A DNA stretch of 64,000 nucleotides from Azolla caroliniana (lineage: Eukaryota; Plantae; Polypodiophyta): NCBI GenBank assembly GCA_043228905.1, contig JBHGNT010000011.1, positions 7,006,001 to 7,070,000 on the forward strand. Direction: 5' to 3'. Each line of letters starts with the position of its first letter. The stretch's first letter is position 1. The position numbers and the translations under genes are program-made. The notes beneath the pieces are model-generated. The model was not told the DNA's origin, searched no databases, and worked only from the letters and a program-made list of their open reading frames with translations. This document shows positions 15,366-22,219 of the stretch, one piece after another.

Positions 15366-15459
15366 CTGATGACCCACTGTACGCCCCTAAGGGATAGAGA
15401 ATCCAACGGACCGAGAAAGAATGCCCTCGACGATGACATGAGATATGCCACGCCTTTCG

Positions 15460-15531
15460 CTGCGTTGCCGGGGATCGAATCCGGGTCACCCGCGTGACAG
15501 GCGGGAATACTCACCACTATACTACAACACC
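15460..15531 (-). tRNA. trnD-GUC: tRNA-Asp(GUC) copy 1, acceptor-stem and T-arm mutations
   Basis: Matches copy 5 except for ~5 substitutions. Confidence 0.75.
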
Positions 15532-15711
15532 ATGTTGGTGTTGGAGGAAGTTTAGTATAGTGGTGAGTAATACTTGTTCGGATCATGTACCGGAATTTCG
15601 AAAACATGGCCCGGTGTCGTCGCCAATAGATGGTACGTGACGATGTTCATTCTCATATGAACTGGAATAGCCATGAACTGGAAGATGACAGGAGATTTGC
15701 CCCGCCCTTCG

Positions 15712-15783
15712 TACCGTTGTCGGGGATCGAACCCGGGTCACCCGCGTGACAGGAGGGAATACTCTCCACTATACTACAACGAC
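15712..15783 (-). tRNA. trnD-GUC: tRNA-Asp(GUC) copy 2, several substitutions
   Basis: 72-nt match with anticodon loop CTGTCAC. Confidence 0.75.
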
Positions 15784-16065
15784 ATGTCGGTGTTGGAGAA
15801 TGTATCCTCTGTACTAGTGGCTCAGACCATGTACTGGAATGTCGAAAACATGGCCCGATTTCGTCGCAAATACATGTTATGCAAAGCTGTTCGTCCGCAT
15901 ATGAACTGCAATACCCATGTGTGCACTCGGATTGGATCATGGTAGTATGGACACTCTCTCATTGACAACCCACTGTATGCCCCCAAGTGTTTGAAAGGGA
16001 TAGAGAATTCAATAGAGCGAGCAACAATGCCCTAGAAGATGACAGGAGATTTTCCCCGTCCTTCA

Positions 16066-16137
16066 CGCCATTGCCGGGGATCGAACCCGGGTTACCTCCG
16101 TGACAGGCGGGAATACTCACCACTATACTACAACGAA
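16066..16137 (-). tRNA. trnD-GUC: tRNA-Asp(GUC) copy 3, several substitutions
   Basis: 72-nt match; A and B boxes intact. Confidence 0.75.
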
Positions 16138-16403
16138 ATGTTGTTGTTGGAGGATATATCCTCTGTACTACTTGCTCCGACCATGTACCGGAATGTCGAA
16201 AATATAGCCCGGTTTCGTCGCAAATGCATGTTATGTGACGATGTTCGTCCGCATACGAACTGGAATACCCAAGTGTGCACTCGGACGAGATCATGGTAAT
16301 ATAGTCCCTCCCTCGCGGACGACCCACTATTTTAAAGGGATAGAGAATCCAACGGACATGAGATTTGGCCTCGAAGATGACATGAGATTTGCCATGCCCT
16401 TCA

Positions 16404-16475
16404 CGTCGTTGCCGGGTATCGAACCCAGCTCACCCGCGTGACAGGCGTGTATACTCCCCACTATACTACAACGAG
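16404..16475 (-). tRNA. trnD-GUC: tRNA-Asp(GUC) copy 4, degenerate
   Basis: 72-nt match with ~8 substitutions. Confidence 0.65.
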
Positions 16476-16754
16476 ATGTTGGTGCTGGAAGAAGTATCCC
16501 TTATACTGCTTGCTCGAATGTACCGGAATGTTGAAAACATGGCCCGGTTTCATCGCAAATACATGTTTTGCGAATATGTTCGTCCGCATATGAACTGTAA
16601 TACCCATGTGTGCACTCGGACGAGATTATGGTAGTGTAGGCCCTCGCTCACTGACAACCCACTATATGCCACCAAGTGTTTGAAAGGGATGGAGAATCCA
16701 ACGGAATGAGCAGGAATGCCCTAGAAGATGATAGGAGATTCTCCCCGTCCTTCG

Positions 16755-20000: not shown

Positions 20001-20660
20001 GGACACCAATTGGCGTGCCACTATGCAGGAAGAAATGCGGGCACTTGATGTCAACAAGACATGGGACCTGGTTGACCCTCCTCGTCACTGTAAACCGATC
20101 GGATGCAAGTGGATATACAAGGTAAAGTACAACGCCGAAGGTTCTGTTAACCGATATAAAGCCCGATTAGTGGCGAAGGGATACGCGTAGACCCACGGAA
20201 TCGACTACGACGAGACCTTCGCTTCGGAAGTGAAGATGACGATGGTTCGTGTGGTGCTGGTGGTTGCTGCAGTAAGGGGGTTGAATAAGCCTTACCCGGC
20301 AAGCGAGATGGATCGGTAAGCTGTGAGCAACCAAACCGGCTAGCAACAGAGCCCGTGAGCTTGGGAGCCGGTTAGCCGGATCGAATCAGTAATCGGAAGC
20401 CTAGTATTAGCGTAGACTACTAGGCAATTATAGTCTCGTAGTAAGTGTCAGATACTCGTGTGAGCATTGAAGTGCGCGGTACTTCTGTTAGTCCCATGAA
20501 GACTTGTATAAATAATGCTACTGAGCATACTTGTATGTACAAAGGTTTTTTTTTTTTTTTGAATATAGCCTTGAAGTTCTGCTCTCTCTGTCTCTCCCAT
20601 GTACTCTGTGTATTCCCTACCTTCTCTGTTTTCTAACGCTTCCGCAAGTAATCGTTTACA
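17039..20660 (+). mobile_element. Internally deleted Ty1/copia element (5' LTR 17039-17432, Met PBS 17433-17444, 3' LTR ~20281-20660)
   Basis: TSD AACGA at 17034-17038 and 20661-20665; PBS TGGTATCAGAGC; gag, CCHC, YVDSGAS and integrase/RT fragments. Confidence 0.92.
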
Positions 20661-20956
20661 AACGACATGTTGGTGTTAGAGGAAGTATAGTATAGTGGTG
20701 AGTACTACTTGTTTGGACCATCTACCGGAATGTCGAAAACATGGCCCGGTGTCGTCGCCAATACATGTTATGTGACGATGTTCGTTCACATATGAACTGG
20801 AATACCCATGTGTGCACTTGAACGAGATCATGGTAATATGCACCCTGCCTCGCTGACGACCACTGTACGCCCCCAAGTCTTCGTAAGGGGTACAAAATCT
20901 GGTGGAGCGAGCAAAGATTGGCCTAGAAGATGACAGGAGATTTGCCCCGCCCTTCG

Positions 20957-21028
20957 CGATGTTGCTGGGGATTGAACCCAGGTCACCCACGTGACAGGCG
21001 GGAATACTCACCACTATACTACAACGAC
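20957..21028 (-). tRNA. trnD-GUC: tRNA-Asp(GUC) copy 7, degenerate
   Basis: 72-nt match, mainly transitions. Confidence 0.7.
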
Positions 21029-21309
21029 ATGTTGATGTTGGAGGAAGTATCCTCTGTACTACTTGGTCGGACCATGTACCGGAATGTCAACAACATAGCC
21101 CGGTTTCGTCGCAAATACATGTGTGCGAAAATGTTCGTCCACATATGAACTATAATACCCATGTGTGCAGTCGGACGAGATCATGGTAATATGGGCCCTG
21201 GCTCGCTAACAACCCACTATACGCCCCCAAGTGTTTCAAAGGGATAGAGAATACAATGATGCAAGCAAGAATGCCCTAGAAGATGACAGGAGATTCGCCC
21301 CGTCTTTCG

Positions 21310-21381
21310 CGCCGTTGCCGGGGATCGAACCCAGGTCACCCGCGTGACAAGCGAGAATACTCACAACTATAGTACAACAAC
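21310..21381 (-). tRNA. trnD-GUC: tRNA-Asp(GUC) copy 8, degenerate
   Basis: 72-nt match with ~6 substitutions. Confidence 0.7.
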
Positions 21382-21650
21382 ATGCTGGTGTTGGAGGGTA
21401 TATCCTCTGTACTACCTACTGGAATGTCGAAAATATAGCCCAGTTTCGTCGCCAATCCATGTTATCTGATGATGTTCGTCTACATATGAACTGGAATACC
21501 CATGTGTGCACTTGGACTAGATCATGGTAATATAGTCCCTCTCTCGCTGACGACCCATTGTACGCCCCCAAGTGTTCAAAAGGGATAGAGAATCCAGCGG
21601 AGCGAGAAAGAATGCCCTAGAAGATGACAGGAGATTTGCCCCGGACTTCG

Positions 21651-21722
21651 CGCCGTTGCCGGGGATCAAACCCGGGTCACCCGCGTGACAGGCGGGAATA
21701 CTCACCACTATACTACAACGAC
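21651..21722 (-). tRNA. trnD-GUC: tRNA-Asp(GUC) copy 9, single C-to-T change in the T loop/B box
   Basis: Identical to copy 5 except GGTTTGA for GGTTCGA. Confidence 0.85.
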
Positions 21723-22219
21723 ATGTTGGTGTTGGAGGAAGTATAGTATAATGCTGAGTACTAGTTGTTCGGACCATGGACCAAAATGTCGAAAACATGG
21801 CCCGGTGTCGTCACCAATACATGTTATGCGACGATGCTCGTTCACATATGAACTGAAATATCCATGTGTGCAATTGGAGGAGATGATGGTAATATGTACC
21901 CTACCTTGTGGACGACCCAGTGTACGTCCCCAAGTCTTCGTAAGGGGTACAAAATCTGGCGGGACAAAGGACGGGGCGAATTTGTTGTCATCTTCTATAG
22001 CATTCTTGCTCGCTCCGTTGGATTCTCTATCCCTTTCCAACACTTGGGGGCGTACAGTGGGTTGTCAGCGAGAGAGGGCCCATCCTACCATAATCTAGTC
22101 TGAGTGCACACAGGGGTATTGCACTTAATATGCAAACGAACATCATCCCATAACATGCATTAGCGACGAAACCGGGCTATATTTTCGAAATTCTGGTACA
22201 TGGTCTGAGCCAACCCATG

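Follow-up and report, generated by a model that had tools for sequence, protein, structure and literature searches.

A tandem tRNA-Asp(GUC) array in Azolla caroliniana is most probably a decaying fragment of a tRNA-gene satellite and not a two-RNA gene

Does a tandem array in which every unit opens with the same tRNA gene and continues into a long, seemingly conserved trailer encode two RNAs per unit, or is it a satellite built on a tRNA gene? The question is raised by a locus of the fern Azolla caroliniana that lies within a stretch of 64,000 nucleotides, hereafter the window (GenBank assembly GCA_043228905.1, contig JBHGNT010000011.1, positions 7,006,001 to 7,070,000 of the forward strand; all positions below count from the first letter of the window). 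A first-pass annotation, made from the sequence alone, had described tRNA-Asp(GUC) units at this locus as a candidate amplified RNA polymerase III (Pol III) cassette for a tRNA and a noncoding RNA, and had named a tRNA-based satellite or a tandem mobile unit in heterochromatin as the fallback. We conclude that the locus is most probably a small, old, rearranged and decaying fragment of a tRNA-Asp(GUC) gene satellite and not a two-RNA gene. The whole unit, tRNA included, decays at about the neutral rate, and only two tRNA bodies are still kept, one of them perfect and the other a single change away.

The array consists of head-to-tail units on the minus strand, the full ones 338-368 bp long, which form two blocks (15375-17053 and 20661-21965). 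For the analysis, units were cut with the 5' end of the tRNA as anchor and then aligned. ARAGORN and Rfam (32.8 to 60.3 bits) both called eight complete tRNA-Asp(GUC) genes on the minus strand, in the interval from ~15459 to 21722, and the unit alignment added a ninth copy, which carries a 15-nt internal deletion, as well as a 6-nt tRNA stub. This agrees with the nine copies counted earlier; the perfect copy (U5) and the copy with a single mismatch (U1) that had been reported among them are likewise borne out by the consensus and by Rfam. Tandem Repeats Finder (TRF) reported arrays at 15681-16899 (period 354) and 20702-21956 (period 341), each with 79% matches, and a repeat finder returned 5-8 copies in each family, with the first block corresponding to repeat families D1-D4. 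A 21-nt word from the spacer matched 10 times within the window as compared to 0.01 matches expected, and all 10 matches fell inside the array, which is thus far beyond chance. One of them, at 22174-22194, is on the plus strand, inside an inverted, spacer-only copy of the unit that meets the partial unit U0p at an inversion junction (21965/21966). Read along the minus strand, the order is the inverted copy, U0p, U1, U2, U3, the tRNA stub, a 3.6-kb insertion, U4p, U5-U7, U8, and U9p. The span first assigned to the array (15366-22215) therefore also includes a 3.6-kb copia element (17054-20660) and the inverted spacer copy (21966-22215), neither of which had been described.

The spacer had been said to be about as conserved as the tRNA. 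The figures themselves are close, with a mean pairwise identity of 0.86 among the tRNAs as compared to 0.81 among the trailers, but this shared level reflects joint decay rather than joint constraint. We compared the tRNA and the trailer of each copy with a leave-one-out consensus. In seven of the nine copies, changes affect 7-16% of the tRNA sites and 8-12% of the trailer sites, and the two rates do not differ significantly. The Rfam scores drop from 60 bits to 33-50, and deletions of 14-100 nt are found in the units. The two remaining copies behave differently. The tRNA of U5 carries no change in 72 positions as compared to 35 of 275 in its own trailer (p = 0.0003), and that of U1 carries 1 of 72 as compared to 28 of 265 (p = 0.009). 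Because the perfect tRNA of U5 sits on such a trailer, it is only the tRNA body that has been kept. A kept tRNA on a decayed trailer is the opposite of what a tRNA-noncoding RNA cassette predicts.

Under that proposal, every unit would be transcribed by Pol III as a dicistronic gene, and RNase Z would cleave the ~290-nt product into tRNA-Asp and a second, functional RNA of ~215 nt that ends at a run of four T (T4). Dicistronic genes for a tRNA and a small nucleolar RNA (snoRNA) were reportedly described in plants by Kruszka et al. in 2003 (EMBO J 22:621). Such genes are marked by a C box (RUGAUGA) and a D box (CUGA) downstream of the tRNA, and RNase Z separates the two parts. The Azolla units are like them in having a tRNA without a terminator of its own, then further sequence and then a T-run, and the existence of such genes in plants (PMC13578239) speaks for the cassette. 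Nevertheless, the Azolla trailer has neither C/D boxes nor a snoRNA-like terminal stem, Rfam match, or conservation above neutral. An exact C box was found in no unit; no CUGA lies between the tRNA and the T4 of any direct unit, the single one in U7 falling past its T4; and no unit has an ACA box before the T4. The Rfam search that had been suggested for the trailer returned no family at E<1. Two weak overlaps with a streptococcal small RNA model were set aside, as they sit on the tRNA and score below the gathering threshold.

The fold and the conservation pattern of the trailer gave the same answer. The minimum free energy of the trailer of the perfect copy is -60.6 kcal/mol as compared to -58.1 +/- 4.1 for shuffled sequences (z = -0.61), and an alignment fold (Alifold) of seven trailers yielded a covariation term that counts as a penalty (+3.66), with many broken pairs. 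Among windows of 20 alignment columns along the unit, none was conserved beyond column-shuffled alignments (p = 0.67); those in the tRNA reached 0.85-0.91, which is no better than the best spacer windows (0.86-0.90). With four trailers as queries, blastn found only chance-level matches elsewhere in the window, and two spacer patterns had 0 matches in metagenome contigs. No public run recorded as RNA contains the stretch, and the possible RNA runs from the same organism contain 0.00 of its sampled words, which is weak evidence because poly(A) libraries catch Pol III transcripts poorly.

The lack of a nearby terminator had favored a dicistronic unit. The absence of oligo-T after the tRNA holds: the 25 nt past each tRNA contain only 4-6 T, with no run of three or more, and a uniform poly(T) terminator directly downstream of the genes is absent from the array, where the first T4 lies at +59 to +217. 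The same interval holds ~8 T in non-flowering plants and ~14 in angiosperms, and a terminator near the gene is needed for efficient Pol III re-initiation (PMC13578239). For the perfect copy, the first T4 is indeed where it had been placed, +217 from the tRNA end. It had been reported to recur at the same place in each spacer. We found a homologous T4 in 8 of 10 spacers, and two units have an extra, earlier one (U1 at +69, U3 at +59). With a per-site retention of 0.876, neutral decay alone is expected to leave 5.9 of the ten, so that the retention shows no significant excess (P = 0.15). Every test that we ran for a functional trailer RNA says no. A T4 at +217 in most spacers, together with the T-poor 25 nt, is thus set against the fold, covariation, Rfam, box, window, T4, and trailer-decay results, with the trailer of the perfect tRNA as decayed as the rest, and we consider the cassette highly unlikely.

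The substitutions themselves carry a further signature. Of the 344 differences from the consensus, 149 are G>A or C>T, and the transition rate is 0.123 per CpG site as compared to 0.050 elsewhere (2.5-fold), with no rise in transversions. This spectrum fits deamination of methylated cytosine, as would be left in DNA that had been methylated and silent for a long time. The units are 11-27% diverged, and neighboring ones (0.81-0.85 identical) are no closer to each other than distant ones (0.72-0.89), which implies that unequal exchange no longer homogenizes the fragment. As in a satellite, ~10 monomers follow head to tail in the window; the homogenization of neighboring monomers, the other satellite trait, was not found. 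It is the former fallback, a tRNA-based satellite in heterochromatin, that the evidence supports.

Two unit subtypes can be told apart, with U0p, U3, and U8 forming one and all other units the second. A dimer composed of the tail of a subtype-A unit and the head of the next unit is repeated at 15389-15675 and 21580-21866 with 87% identity, which hints at an earlier higher-order repeat. Subtype-A units also carry a 17-nt antisense copy of tRNA positions 8-24, located ~20-40 nt upstream of the next tRNA gene. On the minus strand, these copies lie at 20688-20704 and 15553-15569 (both exact) and at 21744-21760 (2 mismatches). Together with the tRNA, the antisense copy could form a 17-bp hairpin over the gene start, while the other units have an unrelated 9-nt stretch at this place.

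Several observations weigh against a plain decaying satellite. CAA triplets, which had been reported just upstream of each gene, survive at -12 and -6 in most units. The tRNA bodies of U5 and U1 outlast their own trailers, which means either that the array is not wholly inert or that it became so only recently. The ~10 copies analyzed give low power for a short conserved element, the weakness of the RNA-run evidence applies here as well, and the substitution spectrum is the one line of evidence from which we infer methylation. The first two points would suit a conditional reserve cluster, that is, a store in which tRNA-Asp genes are kept silenced yet functional, and whose intact copies would be activated in certain tissues or conditions. 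[quoted passage not shown] Against such a store, just one of the nine copies is intact and seven have decayed at the neutral rate, the locus has been shattered by transposons and an inversion, and the 25 nt after each gene lack the terminator that efficient re-initiation requires (PMC13578239). Moreover, gene conversion limited to the tRNA body accounts equally well for the two kept copies. We therefore regard a reserve cluster as unlikely, though not negligible.

The decaying satellite may have formed by head-to-tail amplification of a ~350-bp segment, for which unequal crossing-over or replication slippage would be the simplest route. The founding segment would have comprised a single tRNA-Asp gene of nuclear type and the upstream region with the CAA motifs, a nearby oligo-T terminator having been lost or never included. 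The array was later split when the copia element inserted, underwent an inversion at one end, and was truncated both by a gypsy fragment and by an insertion of organelle DNA; it was probably silenced by methylation. The two kept tRNA bodies could either have belonged to genes that were live until recently, with residual selection on them, or have been patched by gene conversion from dispersed tRNA-Asp genes that covers the 72-nt body. Should transcription of the perfect copy still start from the A and B boxes inside it, Pol III would be expected to continue at least as far as the T4 at +217. The tRNA would then be released by RNase Z, leaving a trailer that would be degraded as waste, a fate described for Pol III read-through products (PMC13578239). 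We also considered a more speculative variant, which we rate as very unlikely: one or two units (16477-16826, perhaps 21382-21722) might be live Pol III genes with a ~290-nt read-through product, whose trailer, or small RNAs cut from it, would act on related satellite units, for instance by reinforcing their silencing. In that case, the array would be a tRNA-driven, self-targeting source of noncoding RNA rather than of waste.

The locus belongs with the known tandem tRNA-gene clusters of plants, as a small and rearranged member. A plant tRNA cluster has been defined as at least five tRNA genes within 5 kb (PMC13437025); here, five tRNA-Asp calls fall within 1.4 kb (15460-16826) and three more within 20957-21722. 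As in a cluster of a single isotype, all are Asp(GUC), all are on the minus strand, they are repeated with their flanks, and the units can be aligned over their whole length. In Arabidopsis, single-isotype tandem clusters are known for tRNA-Pro, Ser-Tyr-Tyr, and tRNA-Cys, the last with 0.4-kb units (PMC7544208, PMC10701932, PMC12308677), and these clusters are methylated, heterochromatic, and largely silent (PMC7544208). The Azolla array shares with them a short head-to-tail unit of similar size (0.4 kb for Cys) with a nuclear tRNA gene, a setting in heterochromatin or among transposons, and pseudogene copies at the cluster edges. In contrast to the mostly intact Arabidopsis genes, most of its copies are dead; it lacks poly(T), while the Arabidopsis Pro genes have uniform poly(T) tracts (PMC13437025); and its methylation is suggested by the mutation spectrum.

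The cereal arrays include maize tRNA-Ile and tRNA-Ala and barley tRNA-Gln, with clusters of up to 110 genes (PMC13437025, PMC12652284). They resemble the Azolla array as lineage-specific tandem amplifications of one tRNA gene with its flanks. However, their flanks are highly uniform, and they are thus young or homogenized, while the Azolla units have diverged by 11-27% without homogenization between neighbors. According to the second survey, Asp(GTC) outnumbers every other tRNA gene in several lineages, among them a liverwort and a lycophyte (PMC12652284). Asp is absent from the clustered isotypes listed in the plant tRNA-cluster surveys consulted here, for PMC12652284 in its main text. Outside plants, Entamoeba has satellite-like tandem tRNA arrays as well, which make up a notable share of the genome and contain nearly all functional tRNA genes; their units comprise 1-5 genes, their spacers resemble microsatellites, and a structural role is presumed for them (PMC2652664), whereas the Azolla array is a decaying surplus of one isotype. 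The locus adds an aspartate-tRNA case to the known habit of plants to amplify single tRNA genes into silent tandem clusters. It stands out in that its amplified unit lacks a nearby Pol III terminator, unlike the Arabidopsis clusters, and in that a few tRNA bodies stay perfect in a neutrally decaying array while their own spacers decay. Searched for genome-wide, perfect bodies on decayed spacers could help to distinguish residual selection from gene conversion that is limited to the tRNA body.

A tRNA-headed unit in many copies also recalls mobile elements. Short interspersed nuclear elements (SINEs) derived from tRNAs are dispersed, end in A-rich, T-rich, or LINE-derived (long interspersed nuclear element) tails, and are flanked by target-site duplications. 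The Azolla unit is like a SINE in having a tRNA-related head with internal Pol III promoter boxes and an unrelated body of a few hundred bases, but it is strictly tandem, contains a full true tRNA gene, and has no tails or duplications. A unit that spread as tandem copies, be it a SINE of this kind or the cargo of a rolling-circle (Helitron-type) element, would have a parallel in the Arabidopsis tRNA-Cys cluster, which sits among Helitrons (PMC10701932). Yet the units are not separated by A-rich or T-rich tails, no target-site duplication was found at either end of the array, and both ends are breakage or rearrangement junctions rather than element termini. The remaining 57 kb of the window contain no solo copy, and the trailer is unlike the neighboring elements. 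The mobile variant of the fallback thus failed on each of these counts, and we hold it to be very improbable.

Misassembly typically arises at features such as the repeats, the inversion junction, and the organelle fragment found here, and the array could in principle be a collapsed or chimeric product of repeat assembly. Parts of exactly this stretch are present in DNA runs that at least three studies (P1-P3) obtained from the same organism, although the share of the sampled words in any one run is at most 46%. Runs from other organisms contain ~5% of the words, presumably the shared tRNA. Furthermore, units that differ from each other by 11-27% are not collapsed identical copies. An assembly artifact is therefore extremely unlikely.

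The junctions of the decaying satellite with its neighbors (Table 1) record its later history. The inserted copia retrotransposon has long terminal repeats (LTRs) at 17054-17432 and 20283-20660 with 91.2% identity (Kimura two-parameter distance 0.094), and a primer-binding site of the Met-i type at 17433. Its reading frames are broken, with the reverse transcriptase (RT) ending after 43 residues, and Pfam recognizes fragments of copia gag, Pol_BBD, rve, and RVT_2. Because the LTRs of this inserted element are 8.8% apart, the array must predate the insertion. We found no 5-bp target duplication at the insertion site, where CAAGC lies on one side and AACGA on the other. Since ~10 nt of unit sequence from around the tRNA start are present on both flanks without a matching duplication, the site was rearranged later. 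At the opposite end of the first block (15375), no LTR was found and the array gives way directly to the RT-RNase H portion of a gypsy pol fragment; to judge from its sequence, this junction is the outcome of deletion or recombination and not of a clean insertion.

At the other end of the array, the inverted unit copy adjoins a fragment of small-subunit (SSU) rRNA of the bacterial (organelle) type, into which a run of ~11 G and a short GCTT-type repeat have been inserted. We take it to resemble plant mitochondrial 18S rRNA. About 900 nt away lies a tRNA-Cys(GCA) on the minus strand (23797-23867), which was also called by ARAGORN. The rRNA fragment, together with the tRNA-Cys, looks like a decayed insertion of mitochondrial DNA that abuts the inverted satellite unit.

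Table 1. Positions of the array, its units, and the adjoining elements within the window
Feature	Position	Strand	Details and basis
Array block 1	15375-17053	-	U4p (partial), U5, U6, U7, U8, U9p; TRF, repeat families, alignment
Array block 2	20661-21965	-	U0p, U1, U2, U3, and tRNA stub; TRF, alignment
U5 tRNA-Asp(GUC), only perfect copy	16755-16826	-	Rfam 60.3 bits, the highest; 72/72 as in the family consensus
U1 tRNA-Asp(GUC)	21651-21722	-	one change in the T-loop/B box; Rfam 57.6 bits
U2 tRNA-Asp pseudogene	21310-21381	-	6/72 changes; Rfam 42.0 bits
U3 tRNA-Asp pseudogene	20957-21028	-	6/72 changes, including acceptor-stem mismatches; Rfam 49.6 bits
U4p tRNA-Asp remnant	16982-17039	-	15-nt internal deletion, 9/57 changes; alignment, called by neither ARAGORN nor Rfam
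U6 tRNA-Asp pseudogene	16404-16475	-	8/72 changes; Rfam 40.0 bits
U7 tRNA-Asp pseudogene	16066-16137	-	5/72 changes; Rfam 32.8 bits, barely over the gathering score
U8 tRNA-Asp pseudogene	15712-15783	-	5/72 changes; Rfam 41.7 bits
U9p tRNA-Asp pseudogene	15460-15531	-	5/72 changes; Rfam 47.0 bits
U8 unit		-	252 bp, ~100-nt deletion; alignment
U9p unit	cut at ~15375	-	alignment
U0p	within block 2, up to 21965	-	spacer only, from ~+47 of a trailer
tRNA stub, 6 nt	20661-20666	-	at the edge of the inserted retrotransposon
First T4 downstream of the perfect tRNA (+217)	16534-16537	-	homologous T4 in 8/10 spacers
Inverted spacer-only unit copy	21966-22215	+	begins at ~+2 of the trailer; 0.72-0.82 identity to the trailers
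Degenerate Ty1/copia LTR retrotransposon, ~3.6 kb	17054-20660	+	splits the array; LTR pair, Pfam
Ty3/gypsy pol fragment, 5'-truncated (RT end, RNase H, integrase)	13134-15374	-	Pfam RT_RNaseH_2, Integrase_H2C2, rve
Organelle-type SSU rRNA fragment	22216-22896	-	Rfam RF00177, 319 bits, 762 nt over the 1533-position model

Of the larger open reading frames (ORFs) that were scanned in other parts of the window, almost all encode copia or gypsy proteins, and the array thus sits as a broken piece within a nest of retrotransposons. A frame of 646 aa at 44813-46753 on the minus strand, located between gypsy gag and pol pieces, has no Pfam match and may be a lineage-specific retrotransposon ORF. Open copia polyprotein frames of 1376 and 1194 aa lie on the minus strand at 38424-42554 and 56579-60163, both with the domain order gag, beta-barrel, integrase, SH3-like, and RT. 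Words of the Met-i type primer-binding site are found just upstream of them, at 42525 and 60181, and the two look like young, possibly intact elements of one family.

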